In this document: in pieces, positions 20,707 to 60,215 of the stretch
Layout of the letters: every line of letters starts with the position of its first letter
Position numbering within the stretch: position 1 is the stretch's first letter
NCBI GenBank assembly: GCA_963514005.1
Contig: OY740804.1
Coordinates: 4,960,001 to 5,024,000, forward strand
Direction: 5' to 3'
Length of the DNA stretch: 64,000 nt
Source: Raja brachyura
Lineage: Eukaryota
Translations under genes and position numbers: made by a program
Notes under the pieces: generated by a model
Database searches by the model: none
Seen by the model: only the letters and a program-made list of their open reading frames with translations
Told to the model about the DNA's origin: nothing

Positions 20707-20755
20707 ATGGATAACACGATGTGGGTTCCCATTCTTCTCATCTCCTCGCTGCCCG
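20707..20755 (+). CDS. Gene A exon 1, signal peptide MDNTMWVPILLISSLP
   Basis: ATG, hydrophobic core, G|GTGAGT phase-1 donor. Joins VSGA at the start of V1. Confidence 0.85.
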
Positions 20756-23700
20756 GTGAGTGAAAGCCAGATCTTGATAATTGCAATGCTCAATGTTAGT
20801 TGGGGTCCCGTGCACCCTTTCCACAGCATAGATGGTTAAGTGTGTGTAGACATGTAATGGGGGAAATGGAACTCAGTGCATTGTGGTGATGGATCTGAAA
20901 TCACATTTGAATATCGAGACTCTGTTCGAGTCGAGTTGAAAGGCATAAAATAGCGAATTAATTTGGAGCCGATACTCCAAGACACCTGGACCGAAGAACA
21001 GGGGTTCCAACATCACCAGGAAGTTAATTCTACTCTAACAAAATGTATTTAGAACTGAGGTGGAAGTCACGATTGTGGACTCATTGTGTCAGTTCAAATA
21101 TTCCCTGTATTTGTCCAACTCAACCCTGTCGTAACCCCAACAATCCCCCAGTCTGAAACTGAACCACTGTCCTCGCTCTGTCCACCCACTCCCAACTCCC
21201 TCTCCATCCTCTCTCCAATCCGCGGCCCAGTCGTGCTGAAAGGTCCAAGGCGAGCCGGGGTCAATGGGAATAGAACATGTCCCAGATGACCAGTGGGTTG
21301 CAAATTCAGTTTAGTTTATTGTCACGTGTACCCAGGTAGAGTTTCTTTGTTGCGAGTAAACTCGCCAGCAGGATGATAATACATGATTGTTATCGATCCT
21401 CTAACAGTGCATGGATACATGTAAAGGAAATAACGTTTAGTGTAAGGTAAAGCCAGCAAAGTCCGATCATGGGTAGTCTGAGGATCATCAGAGAGGTAGA
21501 TGGGACTATACCACTGCGCTCTGTTTGTTGTAGGGTGATTCAGATGCCTGATAACAGCTGGGATGAAACTGTTCCTGAATCTGTCGGTGTGCGTTTCACG
21601 CTAGTAAAGCTCTCCAGTAAGGGACCCGCTTTATTGTAACTTGTCCGTCCTCTGTCCTCAGTCAGAGCGTTGTGAAGGCAGTGGCGGCGGTGAATGTCTA
21701 AACAAGGGTCCGGCCCAGTGTCGGTTGAGAGATGAATGTTGGCAGCGCAGCCGGCGGAAAGTGGGGTATTTCTGTGGGGTGAGAGGCCGGGCACCGCCTG
21801 GGATTGTTGAAAGGCAGCTCCTGCAACACTGCCGCGCTCCCTCAGTACCGCACTGCGATCCCAGCGCAGTTTCTGCTCAAGAAACCGGAGTGGGAAGTGA
21901 ACCCTAATTGTACTGACCCGGTGACAGAACACGGACACAACTGGTACAATAACAGCACTGCCTGCACTTCAGACCGGAGACATTGTCCGTGAAGCAATAT
22001 GACACATCATGGAACGATTTAAGTTTTCTTTCATGTAATCTTCAAAATATATATATTTCCATTAAACAGTTCATTTGCTCTCCATCTGAAAGTTTCTCCC
22101 CTCAGTTTCAGGTGCAGTGTGGGGAGAGAGGGAGGTAAGAGGAGTTGTGGGAAGAGCGATCACAATCGATTGTCACTATGCAGCAGAGTATCGCTCACAC
22201 ACAAAATACTGGTGCCGTGTGCGAAGTCTCCAATGTACAGATATGGTGGCAACAAATGGGCAACACGGACGGAGTGGAAGAGTGTCAATCACAGATAACC
22301 CGGCACGAGGAATATTTACTGTGACTGTGGGGGATCTTCACGCTGGAGATACAGGACGGTACAGCTGTGGAATTGCAACATCTGCCGGCCATCCAATGTT
22401 TAACGTATATCTCCAAGTATCTGACGGTACGTTTCGAAACGATTGACTTGACGTCTCCACTGAAATGCCTGATCCATGTTTCTCCGGGAAGGGTCAGGGC
22501 AGCACCGATATCCCGAGGCTCCGCAGCAGTGCAGAGACCTGCGGGGAGCGGGCGGGGGTCGGGAAACCCCACTCATGTTGCTCTCACCCAGTGCGGGCTC
22601 TGTCCCACTGAGCGGCCACACACTTCAACTGGGACGCTCAGCACTTTTCCCTCCCTCTGAACTATCACCCTGTCAGAGGTTTGCATTCCGACCCAAACTA
22701 ATAATCCGACAGATCAGTGAGAAACAAGTCTTGCTCTCGGTCTGAATAGCCGGGGAATCATAAACAGGGAATCAGTCCCCAGAGCTCAACAGACTGCGTT
22801 CAGTCCTCCCGGGGCAGGCCAGCCCGCTCCCCGCCCCCACCTCAGGGATCAGTCACTCCGCCCCCACCCCGCGCTCTGTCTCTGTCCCTCTGCCCCGTCA
22901 ATGTGCCCCCATCCCCAGCAGCCACTGTTCACCCACCGCCCGGCAGTCAGCCTGCCTCTCCACCCCGACATTTCCCCGGCGGTAAGCAGAATGAACTCAT
23001 CTTTCGCCCCATCAGCCGTCGCACACAACATATAATCCTCCAACATTTTCGCCTCCTTTAACGGGATCCCACAGCTAGCCACATCTTTGCATATCCGCCG
23101 TTTTCTGCATACCGAAGAGACCGTTCCCTGCACAACTCCCTGGTCAACCCACCCAATCCACCCCATTTCCCACCCAAACCACCCCGTCCCCAGGTTCCTC
23201 CCCCTACAACTGCAGGAGATGCAACACCTGTCCATATACCTCCTCCGTCCACTCCGTCCAAGGATTCCAACAGTCCTTTCGGGTGAGGCAGAGGTTCACT
23301 TGCATCTCCTTTAACCTCATGTACTACATCCGCTGTTACAGGTGAGAAAAGTAGAAACATAGAAACATAGAAAATAGGTGCAGGAGGAGGCCATTCGCCC
23401 ATTCGAGCCAGTACCGACATTCATTGCGATCATGGCTGATCATTCCCATTCAATAACCCGTGCCTGCCTTCTCCCCATATCCCTTGATTCCACTAGCCCA
23501 TAATGCTCTATCTAATTCTCTTAAATCCATCCAGTGATTTGGCCTCCACTGCCCTCTGTGGCAGGGATTTCCACAAATTCACAACTCTCTGGGTGAAAAG
23601 TGTTTTCTCACCTCTGTCTTAAATGGCCTCCCCCTTATTCTAAGACTGTGGACCCCTAGTTCTGGACTCGCCCAACATTGGGAATTTTTTTCCTGCATTT

Positions 23701-26700
23701 AGCTTGTCCAGTCCTTATATAATTTTATATGTTTCTCTAAGAGACCCCCTCATCCTTCTAAACTCCAGTGAATACAAGCCTAGTCTTTTCAATCTTTCCT
23801 CATATGACAGTCCCTCCATCCCAGGGATCAATCTCGTGAACCTACGCTGCATTGCCTCAATCACAAGGATGTCCTTCCTCAAATTAGGAGAACAAAACTG
23901 TACCAGAGCCTTACACAACTGCAGAAGAACCCCTCTACTCCAATACTGAAATCCTCTTGTTATGAAGGCCAACATTCCATTAGCTTTCTTCACTGCCTGC
24001 TGTTCCTGCACGTCAAGCATGATTTTCCTTTCATAAATCTATGCTGACTTGGACTAATCCTTTTACTGCTATCCAAATACCCCATTATTACCGCTTTAAT
24101 AATTGACTACAGCATCTTTCCCACCACCGAAGTCAGGCTAACTGGTCTGTAATTCCCCGTTTTCTCTATCGCTCCATTCTTGAAAAGTGGGATAACATTA
24201 GCTATCCTGCAATCCACAGGAACTGATCCTGAGTTTATTGAGCATTGGAAAATGATCACCAATGCATCGACTATTTCTAGAGCCACCTTCCTAAAGACCC
24301 TGTGTTGCAGTCCATCAGGCCCCGGGGACTTATCATCCTTCAGATGAACAAGTGGATAGAGTAGATGGGAGACCAAGCACAGACTTGCCGATCTTCGCTG
24401 AATAACTCTGCTCAGCCTGCCTCGGCCTACGCAACTTCTCGATTGCTGAACACTAACTCCCCCTCCCATTCCAAAACTGACCTTTCTGTCCTGGACCTCC
24501 TCCAATGTCAGAGTGAGGCCAAACGCAAATTGGTGAAACAGCACCTCATATTACGCTTGGGCATCTTACAACGCAGTCGTGTTTGAATATTTACTTCTCT
24601 AACTTCAAGTAACCCTTGCTTTACTCCTGTCTCCATCCCGCCCCGACCTAGTTTGCCATTTAGTTTCACTGTCATCCTGATTACATTTTACTGATTGTTT
24701 GCCTTGTTGTCACCTTCCCTCCAGCTGACATAGATCCATTCTACATTTTCACCTTTGATCAATTGTTTTCACACCTTACCCTTCCATTTCTCTTCTGTCT
24801 CCCTTTCCCATGATTCTCAGGCTGAAGAAGGGTCTCGACCCAAAACTTCACCCCATCCTTCTCTCGAGAGATGCTGCCTGCTCTGCTGAGTTACTCCAGC
24901 ATTTTGTGTCTATCTGAAAGAGATCGTGATTAGTTTTCGCCTTTAAATTCCAAGCCATTTAAAAGGGGTTTTGGCACGCTGGTCATAATCAGTGAGAACA
25001 TTCAGAACATAATATGAGATAATAAGCTTCAGACGTGCAGATGTTGAGTCCACACTTTGGGAATTGTGTTCAGCTTTAGATCCCCAGCTCCAAGAAAAAT
25101 GCCGTTGAGGTGCAGAAAGGTTTTAGGGTGACGCTGCCTGGACAGGATGGGATTGCCACAGGGAGCAATTGGACAAACTCAAACTTCATTCCTTGCTGTG
25201 GAAATGATTGAGCGATGAACTTAGAGAAATGTATCAATCACGAGAATCATGTTCATTTTCCCACGATGTGTGGAATGAGGAAGTGGAGGACAGAGGTAAT
25301 GGAAACTATTTAAAGAGGGGGGATTAGTAAGGTGTCATTTACCGCAGTGGCATGTTTGGTACAGATGAGTGGCTGAAGCTGAACATAATGCACCCAAGTT
25401 CGACCTGAACCACATATGCACAACTGAAACATAACATCCCAACGACTGTTCTGAGGGACAACATTTTCCACACATTGTGTAATATGTATATGGAACCTGC
25501 TGTCAGAGGAAGTTCCGGCAGTTAGAATAACATAATTTATAAAACATTTTGGACAGTTGAGTAGATTGGGATCATTACGAGTGATAAGGGAGAAACTTGG
25601 ACATATGGAAATGGCCTAGAAAGACATGTTGGTCGGCATGAATGAGCTGTTGTGATCGGCATCTTTTGGTGCTCTATAACTCTAACCTTCTTCGGTTTCT
25701 GGGCTTCGCACACTCACAGAGATGTAGATGAGCCGGTGAGATATCAACCGGACGGTTCGGGCTGAGATAAAGGGCTGCTGAGATTTAGCATGTGTTTGGT
25801 TTTGAACTGTTCATACAGGTGACTGAATGTTTGCTCCACTCCCACAGAACCCGTGTCTGCTCCTGTGCTCAGATATCTGTCACCAGCAAATGCCTCACGT
25901 CTCGGAGGCTCAGTGTCAGTGTCGTGTGAGTCTGTCCGTGGATCCCTTCCCATTAATTACACATGGTTTGAGAAGAACTGGTATGGGTCTTCAACGATCT
26001 TGTCTGGCAATCAACTGGATCTGAGTTGTGAAATCCTCGGAGGTCAGCACCAAAAATATTATTGCACAGCGTCAAATAATCGTGGGGCAAAATACAGTGA
26101 AAGTCTCGATGTGAAAGTCGTCAAAGGAGCAGGAACGTGCAGTTATGTGACAGAAATGAACAATACAGGTGCGTGTTATTTTCCCATGGGAATACTGTTT
26201 CATAATTCCACTAGAGTCCCTGAACCGGCTGCTAATCTCCTTGTGGTGATGTTCATGGGCTTCTTGGTATTTGCAGATGGCATCATTGCAGCCACCGTGA
26301 GCTCATGGTGTAAAATGCGAGTGTGTTTGGGGGACTGGCAAATAATTGCCTGTTGCTTTCATCTGGGAGGTGTTGAGCTTCGAAAGGAGAGAAAGACCTG
26401 CACTTATCACAATGCATTGAGTGCATTCCATCACGTTTCTGCCTTCTGCCTTAAAAATGATTTTCTGGCTACCACTTAAGATCTCACGGTCACTTTGAGA
26501 AAGAGAAAGCAACCAAATGTATTCTATTTGGATCCATGATCATTTATAACCAAGAATCTCAGAGGACCTCACATGGTCCACCAACACTGCTGCGCTGGTC
26601 AAAAAGGCACAGCAACGACTGTTCTTCCTAAGAACATTGAAACGGACTGGTCTGCCCCAACAGCTGCTGACGACTTTCTACCGCTGCACGACAGAGAGCA

Positions 26701-29700
26701 TACTAACGTATGGCATCTCTGTGTGGTATCTCAGCTGCACGGAGGCGGAGAGGAGAGCTCTTCAGCGCGTTGTCCACAGAGCGCAAAAGATTATTGGGAC
26801 ACCACTACCAGCCTTGGAGGGCATCTACCACACACGGTGCCTTAGGAACTCCGTCAGCGTCCATAAAGACTCCTCTCACCCTTGTAATGGACTGTTCGAA
26901 CTATTCCCTTCTGGCAGACGCTACAAGGCTACGCCCGCACCTCCAGACTCAGAACAGCTTCATTCCCAGAGCTATAGCGGCTCTGAACCGGCCCCGCTGA
27001 GTGCCCCCACCCCCATGGACTGTCTCCCTCGGATGGTCACGTCGCACAGACACATCTGCACTTTAGTCTGTTTTGGTTTTGACTGTTTTACTGTTCTAAT
27101 GTTCTTTTCACAAATCTTGTTCTCGGGGTATCTGAACCTAAATTTTATTAGTCGCTTAAGTTATGACATCGGATGGAAGTTGCAAACCAAATCTCGTTGC
27201 ACTTATGTGTAATGACAATAAAATATATTATTATTATTATGTACAATTTCATGATCATGTTCATGATTTTAACTGTTAATATGTGTGAATCACTGGAACT
27301 CCAGTAATCTCACATAATTAAAGTGGACCTACTTGGCTGTCACTCCATCAAGTATGACCCTTACATTAGTCAAAGAGAATTTAAAAATGAAACTCCCAGT
27401 AGGTGTGGAGACGCTCTGATTGGAAGTCCATAAGAGAGCGTGAATGGTTTACATCGGTGAGACCAAGCGCAGCCAAGGCCACTTCTTCTTAAAATATTTC
27501 AGTGTCATTCACACTTGAGTCTTTAGCACAAAATTTCATTCACCATTCGACTAAATTTTCTTATGTTTTGTTTGATAATTTTCATCTTATTCTCCCTTGT
27601 GTATAATTGTATATATAATTTGTATATATCATTCAGTTTCAGGAGCGCTGTGGGCAGAGAGTGAAGTAAGCGGGGTTGTGGGAAGAGCGATCACAATCGA
27701 TTGTCACTATGCAGCAGTGTACCGCTCACACACAAAATACTGGTGCCCTGGGACAAGTCGCCAGTGTACACATGTAGTGGAAACAAATGGGAAACATGGA
27801 CAGAGCGGAAGAGTGTCAATCGCAGATAACCCGGCACGAGGAATATTTACTGTGACTGTGGAGGATCTTCACTCTGGAGATACAGGATGGTACAGTTGTG
27901 GAATTACTACACCTGGCGAACCAACATTTAATGTACATCTCCAAGTATCTGAAGGTAGGTTTCTCAGTGAGTGAATTTATGTCTCCACTTTGGCATCCAC
28001 ACAAAACATTAGTTAGCTGGGTGTCTGGTGCACAGTTCTGGTCGCCGCTTTATAAAACAAAAGATGTGAAAGGTTTGGAGAGTTTGCAGAAAAGGTTCAC
28101 CCGGATATTTAGTTGTAGTTTACGAATGCAACATAGAAACTGATCCTTTGGCCCACCGAGTCCACACCGACTAGCGATCACCGGTCACACTAGTTCTATG
28201 TTATTCCACTTTCCCATTCGCTCCCTACACACAATTCTACAATACCACCATTCACGCACCTCATTAGTGCAACAGTATCACTATCAACAATGTTATACAA
28301 GGAAATTAAAAAGTTGTTGATAGTGATACTGTTGCACTAATGAAGTGTTTGAATGTTGGTATTGTAGAATTGTGGCAGAGTTTCAGATTAAAAGAAGATT
28401 ATCTGCAGATGCTGGAATTGTAAAACAAAGAGAGATGGTGCTGCTGTGTACTGGTACAGTGTCAGACATGGTAGTGCTGGCAGCTGGGAGGATGGAGAGA
28501 CGCAGAGATGTACAAATCTGGTAAATGGATTGTGAGGAGAAGCTTTCTGATGGGCAATTTGTCTGTCACTTTGAAATGTAACATCTGAGTAGCTGACATT
28601 GTCCTCATCTGCACTGGAGTGAGTCCCTGTCGATTTCCTTCATAATTGCATTTCTGCACATACAGTTTGATTTTGATTCGACAAATGGGCAGCTTCCTTG
28701 TTGCTTTGAACATCCAGCACTGTTGCATAAATGATGCTCCCCTTTCCTGCTGGTAATTCCTGAAATGTAAAAGAGAATCCAAGATTGTCTGATGATTTGT
28801 CTGATTTGTCGTCAGTTTTAAACACCATGTTATAGGAAAGATGCTGTCAAGTTAGATAGAGTGCAGAGAAGACTTACAAGGATGTTGCGATGACTTGAGG
28901 GCCAGACCTACAGATAGGGGTTGAGCAATCTAGGACTTTACTTCTTGGAGCGCAGGAGGATGAGGGATGATCTTCTGGCAGGTAAACAAAAATCATGCAA
29001 CGAATAGATGTAGTAAATGCACAGAGTCTATTGCCCAGAGTGGGGTAATCGTGAACCAGAGGACATTGTTTTAAGATGAGTGGGGAATGATTTAACAAGA
29101 ATCTGGGGAGTAACGTTTTTACAAAAAGGTTGGTAGGTATATGAAACGAACTGCTGACAGAAGTAGTTATGGCAGGTACTCTTGCAACATTTAAGAAAAA
29201 TTTGGACAGGTACATGAATAGGATACGTTTAGATGGTTAAAGGTCAAGCAAGGGCTGGTGGAACTAGTGTAGATTGGGTGTGTTGGTCAGCACGGACATG
29301 TTAGACCGAAGGGCCTGTTTCTACGCTGTATGACTCTATGTAAATGGATGGGTCAGTTTCCACCCTGGTGGCTCTGGCTAAGGTACAGAGATGGTGGATA
29401 TTGGCGAGTGTTTGATTTTCAGATGTTCACTCAGTGTCTGACTGTTTGCTCCTTTCCCACAGAACCCGTGTCTGTTCCTGTGCTTGGATTCCTGTCACCA
29501 GCCAATGTCTCCTGTCTCGGGGGCTCAGTGACAGTGTCCTGTGAGTCGATCTGGGGATCCCTTCCCATTAGCTACAGCTGGTACGAAAAGACCCCATCTG
29601 GGGATTCAAAGATCTCAGACAACAATACCCTGGATCTACATTGTCAATCCTTCCAACACCAGCACCATCACTATTATTGCATAGCCTCAAATCAACGTGG

Positions 29701-32700
29701 ATCAAAATCCAGTGAAATGGTCAATGTGTCCATCTCCAGCAGTGACGTGCCCTGCAGTTTCCTAGTGAAAATCAACGGCACTGGTAAGTAGTGGAGGGAA
29801 TGAGGACAAGAAGGGGAAGTGAGGGTGGGGTGGTTCATAAGATTACGTGATAGAAACAGAAATAGAATATTCAATCATGGCTGATCTATCTTCCCCGCTT
29901 CAACCCCCGACACCCTGAAATCCATGCACGTTATTTAATTAACTTATCAAGATCAAAATGATGGAATTATGGCCCATTTGTCATTACTTGGTTGCTGGGC
30001 TCCAGAAATAGATTTCCCAGTGCTGGTGTGGGCCAGCTTCCCGGCTAGAACTTCCTCTTATGTTCACACAGCTTTAAACTAGGTTTGCAGTGACATCAGT
30101 CCAAGCACTTTCACTTTCCATCATCTCCACATGACCGACGCTCAAATATGGGAAGGGAACAGAAATGATCCGTAAATGTGGCCACAGTTAACTCCTAGAC
30201 ACTATCAGCTTTGGTGCACTGTGTTACCATTAAGTACAATTGATACTTATCCCATTTTTACCAGCCCCTCATCCATAGTCTTCTCAGACTTGACAATTCA
30301 AGTGCCCTCACCATCTAGGTTTAAAAATATTTCTTGCTCTGATACCTTCCGAATATTCTACTCCTTAACCCAACCCAATGTTCCCCACTTCTACGCACAT
30401 CTGCTGTGTTGATTTTCCACGAAGTACCTTATCTATGTCCCTCACAGCATTGCATAACCTGTAATAGCTTCCTCGTTCCTCTCTGGTGTGGAATAAAAAT
30501 CCCATCTATCCAGTTTAGTTTAGAGATCCAGTGTGGAAGCAGCTGCCTTTAACCGGCACACCAATTCTACAACTAGGGACAATTCTAAATTAAGGGACAA
30601 TTTACAGGAGCCATTTAACCTACAAACCTGCACGTCTTTAGTTTAGAGATTCAGCGCGGAAACAAGCCCTTCTGCCCACCGGGTCCACGCCGACCAGTGA
30701 TCCCCGCACATTATTAACCATCCTACACTCACTAGGGATAATTTTTACATTTACCAAGCCATTTAACCTACAAACCTGTACGTCTTTGGGGTGTGGGGGG
30801 AAACCGAAGATCTCGGAGAAAACCCATGCAGGTCACGGGGAGAACGTACAAACTCCGTACGTGGTCAGGATCGATCCCGGGCTGCATTCGTTGTAAGGCA
30901 GCAACTCTACAACTGCGCCACTGTGCCGCCATACTGTTGGCGTCCTGAGATGTAACCAGTGCTCCAGACTTCAGAATGCAGGGGAAACTGGAGTGCTTGG
31001 AGAAAACCCACGCAATCACAAGGAGGAGGTACAAATTGCGTACAGACAGCATTCATAATCAGGATCGAACCCTTGCCTCTGGCGCTGTAAGGCAGCAACT
31101 CTGCCGCTGCGCCACCGTGCCGTCTACACCTGGCGCCAGAATTGTTACCAGCCCTCCTGCTTGTTATGATAACATCTCCCATTTTCAGGGCTGGACTTAC
31201 CTATAAGCTAAATAAGCTATAGCTTAAGGCCACACACCCTCGGGGGCCTCATTTTTTGAAATATATTTTAATGTTATCATTTTTTAACCCTAATTTTTTT
31301 AGAGAAGGGCCTCAAATTTCATACAGCTTAGGGCCTCAGCAGGTGAAAGTCCGGCACTGCCCATTTGCTGCAAATCACACTGAAGAAGCATTACCCTGTC
31401 TGTTAAGCCTATCAACATCGGAAAATCATACCTACTTGTTCAACTGCAAGTGAAAAGCAGTGAAACTGACTTTTATTTCCTTGTTCCAACAGGTCATGAA
31501 TATTCTTGTGAAAATTCGGTAACATCCAATTACACTGCAAGGTAAACCACTCTGTTTCCAATTAAAGTTACAATGTATTAATTGCTGGAGTTTTGATTGG
31601 GAATGCTTTAATTCGGAGAAAGTTATGCCTTCCTTTCACTGGCATTAAATGCTTGAGAGTATTGATCTGAATGCACAGTGGCACAGTGGAATGGGTGGGG
31701 CGGGGGAGGGAGGGTGTTGGACGGTAGTGGTAGTTGATGAGAAAGTAGGGAAAATAAAGATAGGATTGACACAGGAATCTTGTGAATGCAGTTGACTGAA
31801 CGGCCAAATGACCTATTTCTCTACTGTGTTTCTCTATGGGCCTTTGATCCAATGAACCCAAATATCCGGAAACACAATCAATTGTTGTACATGCTTCAAG
31901 CCTGACACCAAATATAAATTTATCTTTTAAATATTCTTTAATAAAATAAATATAACATGCAAACCAGTTATTAGTTAACTCATCAGAAGGGGAATCGCAC
32001 TGGGTTTACATCTCATTGTGTTGTGCACATGCTTGGATGATAAGAACATGTTCCTCCATTTGCTGCTTTTCAGAGAGTGCTCCCTGCAGTATTCACCATG
32101 ACGTCTCCATCACTAATCTCATCACATGCTGTGAGATGAATATAGTTGCCAAACCCAAGTTTTGCAGTTTAGCTTTGCTGTGACTTGCTCTGGTGTGTTG
32201 CTGATAGGAAAATGCATTGTGAATTATGGGCGAAGCCACCCCCCTTGAGATCACTTGTGGCAACGCCTTGCAATTGTTTGGGACATACACCATAAAATCG
32301 CTGCCGCAGAATGTGACAAAATAGTCTTGAATCAGACTGAATACAGCGAAATGAGAAAACTGACGCTATTTTACTCGTTGAAACTTGAAACCATTACATA
32401 TTCAATCATAGAAACAAAGAAAATAGGTGCAGGAGGAGGCCATTCAGCCCTTCGAGCCAGCACCACCATTCATTGTGATCATCGCTGAACGTCCCCTATC
32501 AATAACCCGTGCCTGCCTTCTCCCCATATCCCTCGACTCCACTAGCCCCTACAGCTCTAACTAACTCTCTCTTAAATCCATCCAGTGGTTTGGCCTCCAC
32601 TGCCCTCTGCGGCAGGGAATTCCATAAATTCAAAACTCTCTGGGTGAAAAGTTTTTCTCAACTCAGTCTTAAATGACCCCCCCTTTATTCTAAGAATGTG

Positions 32701-42892: not shown

Positions 42893-42969
42893 ATTGCTAT
42901 TTGAGAGATGCGGTTGTATCTGAGAGCTCAGAGCTGAGCGACAAGTAGACAAGTGCTGGCATTGTCACT

Positions 42970-43018
42970 ATGGATAAAACAACGTGGATTCCCATTCTTC
43001 TCATCTCCTCGCTGCCCG
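42970..43018 (+). CDS. Gene B exon 1, signal peptide MDKTTWIPILLISSLP
   Basis: Paralog of 20707-20755. The second ATG of gene A is ACG here, so the first ATG is the shared start. Confidence 0.85.
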
Positions 43019-49000: not shown

Positions 49001-52000
49001 TTCTGGCTACCATTTAAGATCTCACAGTCACTTTGAGAAAGAGAAAGCAACCAAATGTATTCTATTTGGATCTATGATCATTTATAACCAAGAATCTCAG
49101 AGGACCTCACATGGTCCACCAACACTGCTGCGCTGGTCAAAAAGGCACAGCAATGACTGTTCTTCCTAAGAACATTGAAACAGACTGATCTGCCCCAACA
49201 GCTGCTGACGACCTTCTACCGCTGCACGACAGAGAGCATACTAACGTATGGCATCTCTGTGTGGTATCTCAGCTGCACGGAGGCGGAGAGGAGAGCTCTT
49301 CAGCGCGTTGTCCACAGAGCGCAAAAGATTATTGGGACACCGCTACCAGCCTTGGAGGGCATCTACCACACACGGTGCCTAAGGAACTCCGTCAGCATCC
49401 ATAAAGACTCCTCTCACCCTTGTAATGGACTGTTCGAACTATTCCCTTCTGGCAGACGCTACAAGGCCTTCTACGCCCGCACCTCCAGACTCAGAACAGC
49501 TTCATTCCCAGAGCTATAGCGGCTCTGAACCGGCCCTGCTGAGTGCCCCCACCCCCATGGACTGTCTCCCTCGGATGGTCACGTCGCACAGACACATCTG
49601 CACTTTAGTCTGTTTTGGTTTTGACTGTTTTACTGTTCTAATGTTCTTTTCACAAATCTTGTTCTCGGGGTATCTGAACCTAAATTTTATTAGTCGCTTA
49701 AGTTATGACATCGGATGGAAGTTGCAAACCAAATCTCGTTGCACTTATGTGTAATGACAATAAAATATATTATTATTATTATTATGTACAATTTCATGAT
49801 CATGTTCATGATTTTAACTGTTAATATGTGTGAATCACTGAACTCCAGTAATCTCACATAATTAAAGTGAATCTACTTGGCTGTCACTCCATCAAGTATG
49901 ACCCTTAGGGGCCTGTCCTACAAGCATGCAACACTATGCGATGAACGCGATCAAACTAGAAGCGGGGGCCGTGCGGAGGTCGGGTGATCCCCTGTACAGG
50001 GCCGTTCCCACCAGCATGCGCCTGCATGCGGCAAGCGCAACCAAACCGACAACGAGGGCTGCGCGGAGGTCGGGTGAGTGGCGCAACGCGGCGCAAAGTG
50101 AGGCGAACTTGGAGCGAAGTCCTTACCTTAAAGTTCGCCAGGACAGAGAGGGGCACACAGAGAGGGGCACAGAGGCACACACACACAGAGGGCCATGGAG
50201 CCACACACATAGAGGGTCACGGAAGCACCTACAGATAGGTTCACGGAGGCATGATATCGGGGCGGTGTGTAATGCGTCGAGGCGACTGCGAGCCGACAAG
50301 CCGTTGCCGCGCGGAATTTTTGAACATAGTCAGTTTTTCGGAGCCCCGCGCGATATCGGGACGAACTCCGCACAATTCCACACGGCTCCGGCGATTGAAG
50401 TGGGACCGGCCCCGCTAATCGCATAGAATTGCATGCTTGTAGGACAGGCCCTTTACTTTTGTCAAAGAGAATTTTAAAATGAAACTCCCAGTAGGTGTGG
50501 AGACGCTCTGATTGGAAGTACATAAGAGAGCGTGAATGGTTTATATCGGTGAGACCAAGCGCAGCCAAGGCCACTTATTCTTAAACTATTTCAAGTGTCA
50601 TTCACCCTTGAGTCTTTAGCAGAAAATTTCATTCACCCTTCGACTAAATTTTCTTAAGTTTTGTTTGATAATTTTCATCTTATTCTCCCTTGTGTATAAT
50701 TGTATATATAATTTGTATATATAATTCAGTTTCAGGTGCATTGTGGGCAGAGAGCGAAGTAAGAGGGGTTGTGGGAAGAGCGATCACAATCGATTGTCAC
50801 TATGCAGCAGTTTACCGCTCAGACACAAAATACTGGTGCCGTGGGACAAGTCGCCAGTGTACACATGTAGTGGAAACAAATGGGAAACATAGACAGAGTG
50901 GAAGAGTGTCAATCACAGATAACACGGCACGAGGAATATTTACTGTGACTGTGGTGGATCTTCACTCTGGTGATACAGGATGGTACAGCTGTGGAATTAC
51001 TATACCTGGCAAACCAACATTTAATGTACATCTCCAAGTATCTGAAGGTAGGTTTCTCAGTGAGTGACTTGATGTCTCCACTTTGGCATCCACACAAAAC
51101 ATTTGTTAGGTGGGAGTCTGGTGCACAGTTCTGCTCGCCGCTTTATAAAACAAAAGATGTGAGAGGTTTGGAGAGTTTGCAGAAAAGGTTCACCTGAATA
51201 TTTAGTTGTAGTTTACGAATGCAACATAGAAACTGATCCTTTGGCCCACCAAGTCCACACCGACTAGCGATCACCGGTCACACTAGTTCTATGTTATTCC
51301 ACTTTCCCATTCGCTCCCTACACACAATTGTACAATACCACCATTCACGCACGTCATTAGTGCAACAGTATCACTATCAACAATGTTATACAAGGAAATT
51401 AAAAAGTTGTTGATAGCGATACTGTTGCACTAATGAAGTGTTTGAATGTTGGTATTGTAGAATTGTGGCAGAGATTCAGATTAAAAGATTATCTGCAGAT
51501 GCTGGAATTGTAAAACAAAGAGAGATGGTGCTGCTGTGTACTGGTACAGTGTCAGACATGGTAGTGCTGGCAGCTGGGAGGATGGAGACATGTACAAATC
51601 TGGCAAATGGATTGTGAGGAAAAACTTTCTGACGGGTAATTTGGCTATCGCTTTGAAATGTAACATCTGAGTAGCTGACATTGTCCTCATCTGTACTGGA
51701 GTGAGTCCCTGTCGATTTCCTTCATAATTGCATTTCTGCACACACAGTTTGATTTTGATTCGACAAATGGGCAGCTTCCTTGTTGCTTTGAATATCCAGC
51801 ACTGTTGCATAAATGATGCTCCCCTTTCCTGCTGGTAATTCCTGAAATGTAAAAGAGAATCCAAGATTGTCTGATGATTTGTCTGATTTGTGGTCAGTTT
51901 TAAACACCATGTTATAGGAAATGTTGTCAAGTTGGATAGGGTGCAGAGAAGACTTACAAGGATGTTGCGATGACTTGAGGGCCAGACCAACAGATAGGGG

Positions 52001-55000
52001 TTGAGCAGTCTAGGACTTTACTTAGAAACATAGAAACATAGAAAATAGGTGCAGGAGTAGGCCATTCGGCCCTTCGAGCCTGCACCGCCATTCAATGTGA
52101 TCATGGCTGATCATCCAACTCAGTATCCCGTACCTGCCTTCTCTCCATACTCCCTGATCCCTTTAGCCACAAGTGCCACATCTAACGCCCTCTTAAATAT
52201 AGCCAATGAACTGGCCTCAACTACCTTCTGTGGCAGAGAATTCCAGAGACTCACCACTCTCTGTGTAAAGAATGTTTTACTTCTTGGAGCGCAGGAGGAT
52301 GAGGGATGATCTTCTGGCAGGTAAAGAAAAATCATGCAACAAATAGATGTAGTAAATGCACAGAGTCTTTTGCCCAGAGTGGGGTAATCGTGAACCAGAG
52401 GACATTGTTTTAAGATGAGTGGGGAATGATCTAACAAGAATCTGGGGAGTAACGTTTTTACAAAAAGGTTGGTAGGTATATGAAACGAACTGCCGACAGA
52501 AGTAGTTATGGCAGGTACTCTTGCAACATTTAAGAAAAATTTGGACAGGTACATGAATAGGATAAGTTTAGAGGGTTAAGGGTCAAGCAAGGGCTGGTGG
52601 AACTAGTGTAGATTGGGTGTGTTGGTCAGCATGGGAATGTTAGACCCAAGGGCCTGTTTCTACGCTGTATGACTCTATGTAAATGGATGGGTCAGTTTCC
52701 ACCCTGGTGGCTCTGGCTAAGATGCAGAGATGGTGGATATTGGCCAGTGTTTGATTTTCAGATGTTCACTCAGTGTCTGACTGTTTGCTCCTTTCCCACA
52801 GAACCCGTGTCTGTTCCTGTGCTTGGATTCCTGTCACCAGCCAATGTCTCCTGTCTCGGGGGCTCAGTGTCAGTGTCCTGTGAGTCGATCTGGGGATCCC
52901 TTCCCATTAGCTACAGCTGGTATGAGAAGATCCCATCTGGGGATTCAAAGATCTCAGACAACAATACCCTGGATCTACATTGTCAATCCTTCCAACACCA
53001 GCACCATCAATATTATTGCACAGCCTCAAATCAACGTGGATCAAAGTCCAGTGAAATGGTCAATGTCTCCATCTCCAGCAGTGACGTGCCCTGCAGTTTC
53101 CTAGTGAAAGTCAACGGCACTGGTAAGTAGTGGAGGGAATGAGGAGGAGAAGGGGAAGTGAGGGTGGGGTGGTTCATAAGATCACGTGATAGAAACAGAA
53201 ATAGACCATTCAATCATGGCTGATCTATCTTCCCCTCTTCACCCCATTCTCCTGCCTTCTCCCCACAACCCCTGACACCCTGAAATTCATGCACGTTATT
53301 TAATTACCTTATCAAGATCAAAATGATGGAATTATGGCCCATTTGTCATTACTTGTTTGCTGGGCTCCGGAAATAGATTTCCCAGTGCTGGTGTCGGCCA
53401 GCTTCCCGGCTAGAACTTCCTCTTATGTTTACACAGCTTTAAACTAGGTTTGCAGTGACATCAGTCCAAGCACTTTCACTTTCCATCATCTCCACATGAC
53501 CGACGCTCAAATACGGGAAGGGAACAGAAATTATCCGTAAATGTGGCCACAGTTAACTCCTAACTCCTAACTGTGGAAGCAGCTGCCTTTAACCGGCACA
53601 CCAATTCTACAACTAGGGACAATTCTAAATTAAGGGACAATTTACAGAAGCCATTTAACCTACAAACCTGCACGTCTTTAGTTTAGAGATTCAGCGCGGA
53701 AACAAGCCCTTCCGCCCACCGGGTCCGCGCCGACCAGTGATCCCCGCACATTATTAACCATCCTACACTCACTAGGGATAATTTTTACATTTACCAAGCC
53801 ATTTAACCTACAAACCTGTACGTCTTTGGGGTGTGGGGGGAAACCGAAGATCTCGGAGAAAACCCACACAGGTCACGGGGAGAAGGTACAAACTCCAAAC
53901 GTGTTCAGGATCGAACCCGGGCTGCATTCGTTGTAAGGCAGCAACTCTACAACTGTGCCACTGTACCGCCATACTGTTGGCGACCTGAGTTGTAACCAGT
54001 GCTCCAGCTTATCATGACAACATCTCCCATTTGCTGTAAATTACACTGAAGAAACATTGCCTATAACTCCTTACATCGGACAAGCATGCTCTCTTGTTCA
54101 ACTGCAAGTGAAAAGCAATGAAATGATTTTTATTTCCTTGTTCCAACAGGACTTGAATATTCTTGTGAAACTTCGAAAAGATCCAAGTATACGTCAAGGT
54201 AAACTGTTCAAGAAGAAACTGCAGATGCTGGAAAATCGAAGGTAGACAAAAATGCTGGAGAAACTCCGCGGGTACGGCAGCATCTATGGAGCGAAGGAAA
54301 TAGGCAATGTATCGGGTGGAAACCCCTCTTCAGACTGATGGTGGGTCTGAAGAAGGGTTTCGGCCCAAAACGTTACCTATTTCCTTCACTCCATAGATGC
54401 TGCTGCACCCGCTGAGTTTCTGCAGCACTTTTGTCTACCTTCAAGGTTAACTACTCTGTTTCCAATGAAAGATGCCATGTACTAATTGCTGGTGTTTTGA
54501 TTGGGATTGCTTCAATTGAAAGAAAGTTGTATCTTCCGTTCACTGGCATTAAAGGCCAGTTGGAGTATTGAGTTGTATGCACAGTGGCACAGCCAGTGGG
54601 ACCACAGCCTCACAATGCCAAGACCCTGAACTTAGGTGCCGTTTATGTGTGTTCTGCATATTTTGCCTTTCATTGTGTAGGAATGAACAGCAGATGCTGG
54701 TTTAAACTGAATATAGACACAAACAACTGGAGTAACTCGTCGGGTCAGTCAGTGTCTCTGGAGAAATGGAATAGGTTGAGACCCTCCTTCAGAGTGAGAG
54801 TCAGGGGAAAGGGAAACAAGAGCGATATCAACGGTGGTATAGAAAGTTATAAAACAATGAATGAAAGATATGCAAAAAAGTAACAATGACCAAGGAAAAT
54901 ATCCATTGTTAGCTGTGGGCTAGGTGAAAACGGGTTGCACAGACAATATGACACTACAAGACAACAGTGAAATTCATACAACGACTAGGGTGGCGGAGAG

Positions 55001-58000
55001 ATGGAGAGAGAGGGGATGCAAGGGTCATTTAAAGTTAGAGAAATCGACATTTATACCATTGTGCAGTAAGTTGCCCAAGAGAAGTATGAGGTGCTGGTCC
55101 TCCAATTTGCATTTGTCCTCACTCTGACAATGTAGGAAGCCCAGGACGGAACGGTCAGTGTGGGAATGGGAGGGAGAGTTAAAGTGTTTAGCAACTGGGA
55201 GATCATATAGTGCCAGGAGGACTAAGCGTATGTGTTCAGTGAAATGGTCGCCCAGTCAACGTTTGGTCCTGCTGATGTATGAGAGTCCACACCTGATACA
55301 GTAGATGAGGTTAGAGGATGTTCAAATGAACTCTATCCCGAAAGGACAGTTGAGATCCTTTGACAGAGTCAAGGGAGGAGGTATAGGGACAGATGTTGCA
55401 TTTCCTATGGTTGAAGGGGAAGGTATTGGGGAGGGGGTGGTTTGGATGGGAGCGAATGAGATAACCAGGGAAGTATAGGTCATAATGTTATAAGGAATAG
55501 GAGTAGAATTGACCCATTCAGCAGGGTTGCAGAGGGAATGGTCTCCTGCTCTCCATCCGACACTCAACTGCACTGGGACAATCTCCAACATCCCCCTCCC
55601 CTTTCTCGATCTCATCGTCTTCACCAAAGGAGATAGACTATCGACTCATGTTTATTATAAACCTACTGACTCCCACAACTATCTAGACCACTCTTCTTCC
55701 CACAGGATTTGTGTGAATGTGGCTGATGGTCAGTGCAGACCTGAAGGACCAAATGGCCTGTTTCCATACTGTGTTTCTCTATGGATCCGATGAACCCAAA
55801 TATCAAGAAACATAACCAATGCCTTTGTACATATTTCAAGCCTGACATTAAAAGATAAATTTATCTCTCAAACATTCTTCTAAACAAGAGTTTAGAAGAA
55901 TGATGGGGGACCTCATTGAAACATACAGAATAATGAAAGGCTTGGATAGAGTGGATGTGGAGAGGATGTTTCCACCAGTTGGAGATTCTAGGACTAGAAG
56001 TTATAGCCTCAGAATGAGATGTTCTTTTATGAAGGAGATGAGGATAAATTCCTTTAGTCTGTGGGTGGTGAATCTATGGAATTCTTTGCCACAGAATTCT
56101 GTGGCGGCCAAGTCAGTGGATATTTTTAAGGCATAAGTAGCTAGATTCTTCATTAGTTCGGGTGTTAGAGGTTATGGGGAGAAGGCAGGACAATGGGGTT
56201 AGGCGGGAGAGATAGATCAGTCATGATTGAATGGCGGAGTAGACTTGATGGGCTAAATTCCCTAATTCTACTCCTATTGCTTATGACCTTATTCTATAAT
56301 AATATGTATATAACTTGCAAACCAGATATTAGTTAACTCACCAGAAGGGAAATTGCACTGGATTATATCTCATTGTGCTGTGTATATGCTTGGGTGATAA
56401 GAACAGATGACTCCATTTGTTGCCCTTCAGAGGGCATTCCCTGAGGTATTCACCAATGATATTCTCCCTTGCTAACCTCATCCCATGGTGTGAGATGAGT
56501 AAAGCTGCCAAACACAAGTATTGCTGCTTTGCCTTGCTGTGACCTGTTCTGGTGTGGTGCTGAGAGGAAAATGCACAGTGAATGTTGGTCTAAAACACCA
56601 CCTTTGATATCACGTATGGCAACACCTTGCAGAGTTGGTCAGTGTCTCAATGTCAGTCACTCCAACAGCAGGAGGTTTCTCCACCTAGAACATGACCCTA
56701 GACGCCATGGTGTTCTCCCTGCCGAGGTTGGAACAGGGTTGTAGAACCGTGTTCACAAAGTGGTGGCTTCAAGGATAGCTGCAAATATTTGGGTAAATCC
56801 CTCAGATACCACACCACTGCTGTACTGACGGGGGGCTTCATGCTGGCTGTCAGATATGAAAACTCCAACAACAGTGACATGATGGCACAGCGGTAGAGTT
56901 GCTCCCTTACTACTTGTGTTCGATCCTGACTACGGTTGCTGTCTTTAGAGTCTATTCGTTCTCTAGGTGACCACGTGAGTTTTCTCCAGGTGTCCCAGTT
57001 TTCTGCCACATTCCAAAGATGTGCAGGTTTGTAGGTTAATTGGCTTCCGTAAATTGTCTCTAATGTTTCGGGTAGATCTAGTGTATGGGGATTGCTGGCC
57101 AATGCAGACTTGGTGGGCCGAAAGGCCTGTTTCCCTGCTGTATCTCCAAACTAAACTAATCTAAACTAAACTAAACCAAACTCAGCTGAACTAAACTAAA
57201 GTAATCATCGCAATAAAAGTGTAACGGTTCCCATCCATTGTTCCTTAATATTTGGACGCAATTGCTCTTCAACCAGTTTCACGATCATTGGTCAATGTCA
57301 CCTTAATGCGAGCAGATTAGCTGCTGCATTACCCACCGAAACAGACTCTACACTTCATTTCCTTTGTTGCACACTTCAAAAAAATTATGAAAGGTGCCAT
57401 ATAAATGCTTGACTTTTGTTCTTTACTAAAGGCCAAGAATCAATGATGAGCCATATCTCACCCTTCCCTATTCTATGTCCAACAGGATCATTTACATAGT
57501 TGTGTCTGGTGTCACTGTGCTTCTCCTGATTCTCATCATTGCCTTCCTTTGGTACCGAAAGCGTAAATCCAAGGGTGAGTTTCTGATTTCCCTTAAATAA
57601 TTTCACAATACATGTCTCAGTTACTTGCAGAATGTCAAGATATTTTAATTCTGTTGTAATCAACAAATGCCCAGCATTAATGAATTAAAATGTAGGAGGA
57701 AGCATGAATGATCAATAATGCTATCATGTTTGATTCTATCATGATGACTTGGTGACAAAAACTGTTATTTTAACATCATCGTACAGAAACTGTCTGAGTG
57801 TGAAATGGCAGAGATGTGTGAGAACTAATAGGCTAGGTAGATGTAAGATTTACATATATACTCTCATCCTCCTAGCTGTTAGAATATGCTTTCTGTGATT
57901 AGCTGTTGTATTTCGAATCGGGTTAAGTCTTGTTTATTGTAACATGCACAAGCACGGTGAAGTACTGTTACAATGAAGATCACGCCTGCAGCCTCACAGA

Positions 58001-60215
58001 GACATAGACAATGTACAACATACCTGCCTCACACAGAGGGTGGTGGGTATGTGGCAGTAGCTGCCAGTGGAGGTAGTTGAGGCAGGGCAGGTCTAGACTG
58101 GACAGGTAATCCAAGATGTGAACGCCCATGAACATGAAGCTGCCAACTATCTTCACCGCCGATGAAAATGTGAAAGTTCACTGAGCTGTTTCTCAGTCAG
58201 AGAGCATTAGTGGAAAGTAAACAGTAAACATTTCAGATCCATGACCCATCATATAACAGGGTAAGAGGGAAAAGAAGGGGGGACCTCATTGAAACATCAA
58301 ATAGTGAAAGTCCTGATGGAGTGGATGTAGAATGGATGTTTCCACTCGTGGGAGAGTCTAGGGCCAGAGGTCATGACCTGTGAATTAAAGGACAACCCTT
58401 TAGGATGGAGATGAGGAAGAATTTCTTTAGTCAGAGGGTGGTGAATCTGTGGAATATTTTGCCACAGAAGGCTGTGAAGGCCGTCAATAGATATTTTTAA
58501 GGCATTGATGGATAGATAGATTCTTGATTAGTACAGGTGTCCTGGATTATGGAGAGAAGGCAAGAGAAAGAGGTAAGGAGGGAGAGATAGATCAGCCATG
58601 ATTGAATGGCGGAGTAGATGGATGGGCCGAATAGCATAATTCTGCTCCTATCACTTATGCACTTGTGAAAACCTGCTAGAGCAGATAAGGTTCAGATGAT
58701 AGACACAAAATGCTAGAGTAACTCAGCGGAACAAGCAGCATCTCTGGAAAGAAGGAATGTGTGATGTTTCGGGTCAAGACCCTTTTTCAGACTGATGTCA
58801 GGGGAGTGGGTGGTACAGAGATAAAATGTAGTCGGAGACAGTAAGAGTGGTCAAAGAACTGGGAATGGGGAGGGGATGGAGAGAGAGGGAAAGCAAGGGC
58901 TACTTGAAGTCAATGAGAAGTCAATGTTCATACCGCTGGTGTGTAAGCTGCCCAAGCAAAATATGAGATGCTGTTCCTCCAATTTGCACTGGGCCTCACT
59001 CTGACAACGGAGGAGGCCCAGGACAGATTGGTTAGTGTGAGAATGGGAGGAGTAGTTAAAGTGTTGAGCAACCGGGAGATTAGATATGTTTAGGCAGCTT
59101 TTGGGAGGGATGGGTAGAGCACAGGAAATATGATCCAATCAGAATATTACATACAGCAACTAGAACAACAGGGCAGATTCTTACTCCCTACGTGCAGTAC
59201 TTTTGGGGTTCTCCTAAATATAAGGTCTTGCACACAACACGTAGATGTTTCAATGTGTTGGAAGGAACTGCAGATGGTGGTTTACACTGAAGATAAACAC
59301 AAAATGCTCTAGCAATTCAGCGGGTCAGGGTCCATCTCTGCAGAAAAGGAATAGGTGATGTTTCGAGACCCTTCGTCAGACTGTGAGTCAGGGGAAAGGG
59401 AAATGAGAGATATAGAAGGTACATAGAACAAATGAATGAACTATATGAATGAATGATGTTTAAACCTGTTCCTGATATGGCTCTATCGACAACATATTTT
59501 CCAGAATCCAATTGCAATACATCACATGGTGAAGACAACAATGAAACCCAGGTAAAAATGTGAAATATAAATTCTCTGAGTGATGAAGAATATAGAACAT
59601 TGAATTATCTGTGTTTACACAGGTCATTCAGCAACACCAGTCCACTCCAGTTTGAGATCCAGCGCAGAAACAGGCCCTACGGCTTACTGAGTCCACAACG
59701 ACCGATGAACACTATCCTACACACACTAGGGGCAATTTGCAATCATACCAAACCAATTAACCTACAAACCTGTTGTCGGCGCTGCCAGGCAGCAACTCTA
59801 CCGCTGCTCCACCGTGCTACACTATCATTGTGTTGTAAACAGCAGCAATGGCTTGTTTGTCCACTGAACAGTTTGAGACCTATTTTGTAATAGACATCTG
59901 TTGAGGACCTTTAAAATCTATTAGGTTGTAAAATTGGATTTTGTTATATTTCAGCAAATGGCAGTGTTGGATGGGAACCGCATTGATGCAAATCTGCAGC
60001 AACTTGGAAACAACAGGGCAGCTGACCATTTGGATAACACGTATGCAGTGGTGAATTGTCAAAGGAAGTCGAGATCAAATCACCATGTGGCTGAAAACGT
60101 TGTCGTCTACGCAGATGTCAATTTTTATCGCAACTGCCCAAAGGGCAATCGGAAACCCCACTCTCCTGGGACTCCAGAGAACCCCGAGTCAATCTATGCC
60201 TCTGTTGTTTCTTAG
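42970..60215 (+). CDS. Gene B: CD300/pIgR-related V-C2-V-C2 Ig-superfamily receptor, inhibitory ITIM type (591 aa, 9 exons)
   Basis: join(42970-43018,44057-44377,48386-48706,50730-51047,52802-53122,54150-54198,57486-57574,59505-59551,59955-60215) = 1776 nt. All introns are GT-AG, phases are 1,1,1,1,1,2,1,0, and the frame is open. Confidence 0.88.
44057..44377 (+). CDS. Gene B exon 2, V1
   Basis: KYWCDCRWNPC...HTGWYRCG. Splice sites as in gene A. Confidence 0.92.
45302..46870 (-). mobile_element. CR1 LINE (RT) inside a Penelope fragment; more complete paralog of the gene A intron 2 copy
   Basis: ORF 45659-46612 with YLDFQKAFDKVPH and KFADDTKLGG. Confidence 0.92.
48386..48706 (+). CDS. Gene B exon 3, C1
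   Basis: EPVSAPVL...YTWCEKNKYRC...YYCTASN. G|GTACGT donor. Confidence 0.9.
49094..49784 (+). mobile_element. Rex1/Babar LINE 3' fragment (paralog of 26556-27239)
   Basis: ORF 49175-49519 and (att)n tail. Confidence 0.85.
49908..50452. mobile_element. PIF/Harbinger-type MITE (gene B only)
   Basis: 24-bp TIR (g/a)GGGCCTGTCCTACAAGCATGCAA with TTA TSD. Empty site gaccc-tta-catt at about 27361. Confidence 0.85.
50730..51047 (+). CDS. Gene B exon 4, V2
   Basis: VSGALWAES...KYWCRGTSRQC...DTGWYSCG. G|GTAGGT donor. Confidence 0.92.
52024..52274 (-). mobile_element. Young CR1 3' fragment (gene B only)
   Basis: Flanked by a tttactt duplication. Absent at about 28940. Confidence 0.85.
52802..53122 (+). 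CDS. Gene B exon 5, C2
   Basis: EPVSVPVL...YYCTASN...VPCSFLVKVNGT. G|GTAAGT donor. Confidence 0.9.
54150..54198 (+). CDS. Gene B exon 6, stalk (G)LEYSCETSKRSKYTS(R)
   Basis: 49 nt, phase 1 to 2. Required to connect C2 to the phase-2 TM exon. Confidence 0.82.
54680..55700 (-). mobile_element. Penelope-like element fragments
   Basis: pLTR-like sequence and endonuclease remnants on the minus strand. PFLDLIV...YYKPTDSHNYL RT remnant on + at about 55590-55690. Confidence 0.6.
57486..57574 (+). CDS. Gene B exon 7, uncharged TM: IIYIVVSGVTVLLLILIIAFLWYRKRKSK
   Basis: ccaacag acceptor, 23-aa hydrophobic run, basic stop-transfer sequence, G|GTGAGT donor. Confidence 0.9.
59505..59551 (+). CDS. Gene B exon 8, cytoplasmic ESNCNTSHGEDNNETQ
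   Basis: ttttccag acceptor and CAG|GTAAAA donor. Converts phase 1 to phase 0 as required. Confidence 0.75.
59955..60215 (+). CDS. Gene B exon 9, ITIM tail (NTYAVV, VVYADV, SIYASV)
   Basis: tttcag acceptor, phase 0, two canonical S/I/V/L-x-Y-x-x-V motifs, TAG stop. Confidence 0.88.
   Translation, partial: QMAVLDGNRIDANLQQLGNNRAADHLDNTYAVVNCQRKSRSNHHVAENVVVYADVNFYRNCPKGNRKPHSPGTPENPESIYASVVS

Follow-up and report, generated by a model that had tools for sequence, protein, structure and literature searches.

Whether cartilaginous fish build activating and inhibitory immune receptors as pairs sharing one ectodomain is the question raised by a stretch of 64,000 nucleotides (nt) of Raja brachyura DNA (NCBI GenBank assembly GCA_963514005.1, contig OY740804.1, positions 4,960,001 to 5,024,000 of the forward strand), hereafter the window, in which positions are counted from the first letter. 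Two receptor genes, gene A and gene B, lie there in tandem, each encoding four immunoglobulin (Ig) domains in V-C2-V-C2 order. They show the layout of paired receptors, namely adjoining genes, highly similar ectodomains, and different transmembrane (TM) segments and tails. We read them as separate and intact members of the modular domain immune-type receptor (MDIR) family, gene A having an Arg in its TM segment and a short tail, and gene B having ITIMs (immunoreceptor tyrosine-based inhibitory motifs), and the two would together act as an activating/inhibitory pair. To this reading we give a probability of roughly 0.7.

Exon structure of the two genes

Gene A (20707-37612, forward strand) comprises eight exons, its 1518 nt corresponding to 505 codons and a stop, and gene B (42970-60215, forward strand) nine, its 1776 nt corresponding to 591 codons and a stop. 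An AG acceptor and a GT donor are present at every junction read in both genes, all 17 exons are open, and phases chain without a stop, in agreement with the first-pass annotation of this DNA, which had described two complete, open and phase-consistent genes in tandem. The Ig exons of both genes measure 318 or 321 nt and run from phase 1 to phase 1, and the stalk exon measures 49 nt and runs from phase 1 to phase 2, the TM exons then bringing the reading frame back. Each gene encodes a leader, the V, C2, V and C2 domains, a Cys-containing stalk and a TM segment, and to each belong about 300 nt of conserved 5' flank, a leader, a stop and an AATAAA signal of its own, the latter at 37811 and 37825 for gene A and at 61033 for gene B. 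Near 60891-60971, considered for a third leader, nothing similar to the leader region turned up.

Homologous proteins, among them MDIR3 and MDIR5 of Rostroraja eglanteria, both of which we take to be cDNA-derived, give collinear tblastn alignments that reproduce the junctions, so that transcripts of a related skate would support them. The junctions predicted earlier (31541>36853, 36943>37565, 54198>57486, 57574>59505 and on to >59955) all proved right, and the exons then deemed not recoverable, those of the leader and stalk and that of the TM segment in gene B, were all recovered, the gene B leader lying at 42970-43018. The exons of gene A, with its 5' flank, are the following.

20402-20706, forward strand: 5' flank, putative promoter and 5' untranslated region, conserved with the gene B flank at 42663-42969
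20707-20755, forward strand: exon 1, leader MDNTMWVPILLISSLP, with ATG and GTGAGT donor, ending in phase 1; matches MDIR5 residues 1-12 and MDIR3 residues 1-16
22106-22426, forward strand: exon 2, V1, a pIgR/CD300-type V domain with C-C' loop RVRSLQC; Pfam V-set 9e-13; AG and GT present; initial residues VSGA agree with the MDIR5 protein
25848-26168, forward strand: exon 3, C2-1, an FCRL-type C2 domain; Pfam Ig_2 1.6e-6 and Ig_3; donor GTGCGT; 80% identity to MDIR5 residues 120-226
27637-27954, forward strand: exon 4, V2; Pfam V-set 1.9e-13; in PDB, pIgR 2.3e-50 and CD300/CLM-1 8e-19
29463-29783, forward strand: exon 5, C2-2; in PDB, human FCRL5 4.3e-32; 85% identity to MDIR5 residues 333-440
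31493-31541, forward strand: exon 6, stalk GHEYSCENSVTSNYTA with one Cys, phase 1 to 2; AG and GT present; near-identical to the MDIR5 stalk GHEYSCENPITSSYSA
36853-36943, forward strand: exon 7, TM segment with Arg SYISWKVGRWLLFLLLVIWSTLTAVFTRGSK; 93.5% identity to MDIR5 residues 456-486
37565-37612, forward strand: exon 8, short tail RRDESELRHSAHELQ and stop; 81% identity to the last 16 residues of MDIR5 (486-501)

The exons of gene B are listed below, P0159, P0174 and P0003 being homologous database proteins.

42970-43018, forward strand: exon 1, leader MDKTTWIPILLISSLP, similar to the gene A leader (61/76 nt), with GTGAGT donor; 94% identity to MDIR3 residues 1-16
44057-44377, forward strand: exon 2, V1, with C-C' loop DCRWNPC; Pfam V-set 4e-11
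48386-48706, forward strand: exon 3, C2-1; Pfam Ig_C17orf99 1e-5 and Ig_3; donor GTACGT
50730-51047, forward strand: exon 4, V2; Pfam V-set 1.2e-13
52802-53122, forward strand: exon 5, C2-2, used as query of the whole-library HMMER search
54150-54198, forward strand: exon 6, stalk GLEYSCETSKRSKYTS; 100% identity to Leucoraja erinacea P0159 residues 653-670 and 88% to MDIR3 residues 548-564
57486-57574, forward strand: exon 7, neutral TM segment RIIYIVVSGVTVLLLILIIAFLWYRKRKSK; 82-90% identity to MDIR3 and models of L. erinacea and A. radiata
59505-59551, forward strand: exon 8, cytoplasmic ESNCNTSHGEDNNETQ; 87% identity to MDIR3 residues 596-610 and P0174 residues 487-502
59955-60215, forward strand: exon 9, ITIM tail (NTYAVV, VVYADV, SIYASV) and stop; 80.6% identity to MDIR3 residues 609-701, 75% to P0174 and 68% to P0003 (E 4e-31)

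Relationship to known receptors

The HMMER search just mentioned returned 820 proteins at E<=1e-3, and the ten top matches that were looked up belong to elasmobranchs and bear the names 'polymeric immunoglobulin receptor-like', 'Fc receptor-like protein 5' or 'uncharacterized'. With Rhinoraja proteins as queries, two further searches each yielded about 90 members of the family, their sources being skates, stingrays, mantas, sawfish, electric ray, many sharks and Callorhinchus, with Modular domain immune-type receptor 3 (P0164, 701 aa) and 5 (P0190, 501 aa) of R. eglanteria among the matches. When the TM and tail region of P0013 served as query, for MDIR1 or short Arg-TM forms, three Rhinoraja proteins only were obtained. 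Database searches were made exon by exon rather than on joined full-length proteins, and in them no database protein was more than 91.7% identical to any exon, the best matches being all from Rajidae; the source genome seems to have no annotation in these collections.

MDIR5, for which the reference is Cannon et al. 2006 (Immunogenetics 58:362, PMID 16738934), is collinear with all eight exons of gene A at 74-93.5% identity in tblastn (Ig domains 74-85%, TM segment 93.5%, tail 81%) and shares its plan of leader, V, C2, V, C2, Cys stalk, Arg-bearing TM segment and 15-residue tail exon. It differs in the C-C' loop of V1, which is DWKWNPC, a type borne here by the inhibitory-type gene B, gene A having RVRSLQC. 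MDIR3 is likewise collinear with all nine exons of gene B at 80-89% (stalk 88%, TM segment 82%, small exon 87%, tail 80.6%), differing from it by an extra N-terminal V domain (V-V-C2-V-C2). An L. erinacea protein annotated as 'polymeric immunoglobulin receptor-like isoform X2' (P0174, 593 aa) matches gene B exon for exon, with the same V-C2-V-C2 order, a length of 593 versus 591 residues, and collinearity from stalk to tail at 75-90%. Pfam assigns two V and two C2 domains to MDIR5 and P0174, and three V and two C2 domains to MDIR3, and in alignment the C-termini of both genes and their homologues are almost superimposable.

On this sequence evidence gene A is of the MDIR5 type and gene B of the MDIR3 type, placing both in the elasmobranch MDIR family in a rajid-skate-like genome. 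This collinearity sustains the earlier view of a chondrichthyan, MDIR-related pair. The suggestion of an undescribed four-domain MDIR-like subfamily is on the contrary to be abandoned, MDIR5 being already V-C2-V-C2 and collinear with gene A down to its TM segment and tail, and gene B matching both MDIR3 and the 593-aa isoform. Thus, the pair consists of new members of a known family and not of a new receptor class. The MDIR family was described from skate in 2006, by Cannon et al. in Immunogenetics, the abstract reportedly including both charged-TM and ITIM forms. Both forms occur in the pair, as the Arg of gene A and the two canonical ITIMs of gene B, and both cassettes are widespread among homologues.

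Several automatic models from other species (P0005, P0157, P0152, P0001 and P0004) fuse neighbouring family genes, and database architectures for the MDIR-type family should not be taken at face value. Examples of such fusions in NCBI models are a TM segment after which another V domain and TM segment begin, a TRIM69-like N-terminus on an MDIR 3' half, and 'titin-like' names.

Membrane segments and tails

In gene A, the most hydrophobic 19-mer takes in the TM Arg, at position 3, and the tail, taken from where the hydrophobic core ends, has 20 residues, with no Tyr among them; an Arg in the TM segment and a Tyr-free tail had been foreseen, only the tail length of about 19 residues needing correction. 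In gene B, the hydrophobic core is free of charged residues and the tail extends for 120 residues after it, with the canonical ITIMs VVYADV and SIYASV 29 residues apart, as expected from the neutral TM segment and ITIMs ascribed to it. The description of one four-Ig ectodomain with opposite signalling ends is consequently upheld, near-identical V-C2-V-C2 blocks being joined to an Arg-TM stub in one gene and to a neutral TM segment with an ITIM tail in the other. At 60030-60045, gene B has lost five residues, NEGGI, that stand before the first tail Tyr in MDIR3 and in Leucoraja and Rhinoraja homologues, and this loss turns the canonical ITIM ITYAVV, retained by MDIR3 and the L. erinacea isoform, into NTYAVV. 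The tail of P0174 also shows a weak Pfam match to SIT (SHP2-interacting adaptor), below the curated cut-off.

The cassette of the gene A type, W.V[GIL]RW[L/V]LF..., followed by TRxxK and about 15 residues to the stop, was found in 45 fetched homologues, every one of which carries the Arg. Skates, stingrays, mantas and sawfish are represented among them, as are six shark lineages, with hexanchiform, carcharhiniform, orectolobiform and lamniform sharks included. The shark sequences have V-I or V-L just before the Arg, and this places it inside the helix. The neutral TM segment and ITIM tail of the gene B type were found in about 25 fetched homologues. Both cassettes are older than the split between sharks and rays. 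Between species, conservation of the gene A TM exon (93.5%) exceeds that of the Ig domains (74-85%).

In the mechanism that we propose, the A and B proteins would bind the same or related ligands. Once phosphorylated, the ITIMs of gene B would recruit SHP-type phosphatases and damp the cell, and the Arg of gene A would pair with an Asp-bearing adaptor holding an ITAM (immunoreceptor tyrosine-based activation motif), in FcR-gamma or CD3-zeta style, and activate it. We infer these functions from the motifs (TM Arg and ITIMs) and from established paired-receptor biology. An Arg in the outer third of the TM segment is the FcR-gamma/CD3-zeta style, and that of gene A would in this respect resemble FcR-gamma-coupled LILRA, NKp46, OSCAR and Fc-alpha-RI. 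Mammalian pairs (KIR2DL/2DS, LILRB/LILRA, PILR-alpha/beta, CD300a/c and Siglec-5/14) are, like genes A and B, adjacent, with near-identical ectodomains kept alike by conversion and with an ITIM tail opposed to a charged TM segment and short tail. They differ in that they share no common ancestry as pairs with A and B and have no V/C2 mosaic in their families.

Several points speak against an activating/inhibitory pair. MDIR5 was reportedly listed in 2006 among forms without characteristic signalling motifs and not classed as activating. The Arg of gene A sits on the N-terminal border of the hydrophobic core, where it could snorkel rather than pair with an adaptor, and the first tail Tyr motif of gene B is degenerate relative to that of MDIR3. 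Homologues of FcR-gamma, PIGR and FcRL were not found in the shark data available at the time of an earlier survey (Akula et al. 2014, PMC4016189). Sequencing runs compared with the window, none of which is on record as RNA, gave mostly repeat-derived contigs and no splice joint of the models. A 182-nt contig, 94% alike, coincides with 57484-57573, the gene B TM exon, and diverges at both ends, the RNA status of its run being a guess.

Gene A might instead not be activating, its Arg acting as a juxtamembrane stop-transfer residue and its product as a short-tailed, non-signalling decoy or ligand sink competing with the inhibitory gene B. The hydrophobic core indeed counts 17 residues and has the Arg at its edge, after K-V-G, the tail has no motif, and the reported classing of MDIR5 by its authors as well as the absence of FcR-gamma from the shark survey point the same way. 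Nonetheless, considering that (i) the Arg is kept in 45 of 45 homologues with this TM type, in sharks and rays, the shark V-I or V-L setting it within the helix, (ii) unless the VGR residues are counted in, a 17-residue core is too short for the bilayer, the Arg being part of the most hydrophobic 19-mer, and (iii) conservation of the TM exon beyond that of the ectodomain suggests a protein partner in the membrane, a decoy role seems unlikely to us, and the activating role of gene A within the pair is preferred.

Ectodomain composition

By Pfam, the Ig exons are V-set (E 4e-11 to 1e-13) alternating with Ig_2, Ig_3 or Ig_C17orf99. Compared with solved structures, the V2 exon matches pIgR over several domains, followed by CD300f/CLM-1 and CD300a, and then by NKp44, TIM, Fc-mu-R and TREM2. 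An extra C-C' Cys pair, YWC-x6-C, characteristic of V domains of this kind, occurs in all four V exons. The C2-2 exon matches human FCRL5 in PDB over 6 stretches, the next match being at 5e-3. Since the V exons match pIgR and CD300 and the C2 exons FCRL5, the ectodomain is a mosaic in which V domains of pIgR/CD300 type are combined with C2 domains of FCRL type. Two V and two C2 subtypes make up the pair, and homologues have from 1 to at least 6 such modules in varying order.

None of the three reference families displays this V-C2 alternation. In pIgR, V-type domains only are combined with a transcytosis tail, whereas here C2 domains alternate with V domains, and gene A ends in a stub of 20 residues and gene B in an ITIM tail. 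CD300 receptors bear a single V domain of like type on a stalk, in contrast with the four Ig domains of A and B. FCRL receptors have C2/I-type domains only, those resembling FCRL5 being here interleaved with pIgR-type V domains.

These resemblances leave some room for a second explanation, that both genes encode receptors for immunoglobulins, functional counterparts in elasmobranchs of pIgR, Fc-alpha/mu-R or FCRL that bind IgM, IgW or IgNAR, and not sensors of pathogens or self-ligands. The V domains are closest to the D1 type of pIgR, with Fc-mu-R/FAIM3 also among the matches, and the C2 domains to FCRL5, a known IgG binder. To our knowledge, no pIgR has been identified in cartilaginous fish, and PIGR was among the genes with no homologue in the shark survey. 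On the other hand, the same V type is found in lipid-binding CD300, TREM and TIM receptors, the tails are not of the transcytosis type, and the family is large and fast-evolving, unlike the single-copy pIgR, all of which makes this explanation quite improbable. It is in any case compatible with paired signalling and no strict alternative to it.

Divergence between genes A and B

The similarity of the two genes is concentrated in one long tract.

21444-31547, forward strand: gene A tract nearly identical to gene B 43393-54204, introns included, as collinear blastn blocks

From 21444 to 30971 the collinear blocks show 93.5-96.6% identity, introns included, dropping to 82% at the stalk exon and to about 80% on to 32272 in A and 56631 in B, after which no similarity is left, the TM and tail exons being unrelated. 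The 5' flanks are 89.7% identical over 437 nt (42663-43100 on the B side), with similarity beginning about 305 nt upstream of each ATG. Mismatches amount to 3.2% (251/7871 nt) in aligned non-coding DNA, and 375 of 423 ectodomain residues are identical (88.7%), the ectodomains of A and B being closer to one another than either is to MDIR5, MDIR3 or the proteins of other skates. Because of this closeness, and since both cassettes predate the split between sharks and rays, a recent copy or conversion set one ectodomain block before two old cassettes. About 11 kb, from promoter to stalk, have thus been copied or converted recently between A and B, the TM and tail cassettes having stayed distinct.

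It could be thought that A, B or both are silent copies, or that their tandem order is an assembly artefact of a repeated locus, with possibly a single gene or collapsed or expanded haplotypes behind it, given the lack of RNA support from the source genome in the sequencing runs, a repeat-rich locus with LINE (long interspersed nuclear element) fragments, and the difficulty of assembling genes 97% identical over 10 kb. This is very hard to reconcile with 17 of 17 open exons and intact splice sites, with 3% intron differences, large indels and wholly unrelated 3' ends, unlike haplotype copies, with independent DNA runs in which the TM exon of gene B and the sequence around it recur with few differences and unique parts of the gene B 3' region are reproduced, and with the presence in other elasmobranch genomes of numerous members of both types of cassette on a single chromosome-scale contig.

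The two intact genes differ unevenly along the ectodomain, as the comparison of each exon with non-coding DNA (Fisher test) indicates.

V1: A/B difference 7-10%, the 7% end coming from an ungapped codon alignment; p versus non-coding 1e-3
C2-1: A/B difference 10%; p versus non-coding 5e-8
V2: A/B difference 5.3%; p versus non-coding 0.05
C2-2: A/B difference 2.8%; not significant versus non-coding

The V1 and C2-1 exons have 2-3 times the intron divergence between A and B. The ratio of non-synonymous to synonymous substitution (dN/dS) is 0.59 overall, 0.75-0.78 in V1 and C2-1, and 0.33-0.36 in the proximal exons, synonymous sites being raised too in the distal ones. Classical positive selection was considered and rejected, the overall ratio departing toward constraint (Fisher p 0.027). 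The pathogen arms race put forward in the first-pass annotation is not borne out by these ratios, yet both distal exons are significantly more diverged than introns.

In V1, the sole strongly divergent patch is the C-C' loop (22214-22243 in A and 44165-44194 in B). Its types are trans-species, DCRWNPC being found in gene B, in domains 1 and 2 of MDIR3 and in domain 1 of MDIR5, and RVRSLQC in gene A and in Amblyraja domain 2, and they are shuffled relative to the signalling cassettes between species. That loop types are common to several skate species argues for the divergent patches being old variants, kept or imported by short conversions, rather than new mutations. It seems likely that V1 and C2-1 have been kept different between A and B, partly by such old trans-species loop variants. 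A wider synthesis can be drawn, though we consider it doubtful. In it, selection would act against homogenisation, so that with about 11 kb converted the distal exons keep old loop variants and give activator and inhibitor slightly different ligands, in an arms race of decoy and escape; the Arg-bearing TM segment, unchanged across elasmobranchs, would couple to a novel adaptor in a lineage from which FcR-gamma was reported missing; and the mosaic of pIgR-type V and FCRL-type C2 domains could include the long-sought Ig receptors of cartilaginous fish.

Surroundings of the pair

Upstream of gene A, the 3' end of a third gene is recognised on the forward strand at 8472-8520, 10308-10398 and 11015-11062, with the same stalk, an Arg-bearing TM segment YISWRVGRWLFFLLLVIWSISTAVFTRGSK, a short tail RRDDSEPIHSTHELQ and AATAAA at 11267. 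With this gene beside A and B the locus is therefore a cluster, the order within the window being Arg-TM (upstream gene), Arg-TM (A) and ITIM (B). The intron between stalk and TM exons of gene A measures 5.3 kb, inflated by LINE insertions, versus 1.8 kb in the upstream gene. Fragments of LINE-type reverse-transcriptase open reading frames at 19578-20312, 32400-34500, 38891-39316 and 45659-46612 flank and interrupt both genes.

An alternative stalk exon, similar to residues 546-575 of Rhinoraja P0180, is present at about 32072-32161, in intron 6 of gene A. It is open from phase 1 to phase 2, with an AG acceptor and a weak GTTTTG donor, and could be used only in place of the stalk exon of 49 nt; copies with stops occur at about 56431-56520 in gene B and 9125-9196 in the upstream gene. 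On the minus strand, antisense pseudo-exons at 28526-28765, 51608-51847 and 15735-15929 encode another ITIM-type tail (SIIYATV, VSYSDV), 65-69% identical to residues 777-857 of Rhinoraja 'pIgR-like' P0005, with one in-frame stop common to all three. Two of them lie in intron 4 of A and B and are therefore older than the copy event between these genes. A run of 129 N at 484-612 is an assembly gap or masked sequence.

Significance for elasmobranch receptors

Genes A and B are MDIR5-like and MDIR3-like and found no new family, their homologues being routinely annotated by automatic procedures as 'pIgR-like' or 'FCRL5-like'. They provide a resolved genomic example of how an activating/inhibitory pair would be constructed in cartilaginous fish, from a shared ectodomain block and two old cassettes. 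The coexistence of pIgR-type V and FCRL-type C2 domains in elasmobranch receptors runs contrary to the survey of 2014 (PMC4016189), in which sharks showed neither family. The paired-receptor design, together with the FcR-gamma-style Arg in the TM segment, would be placed by the age of the two cassettes at or before the split between sharks and rays.

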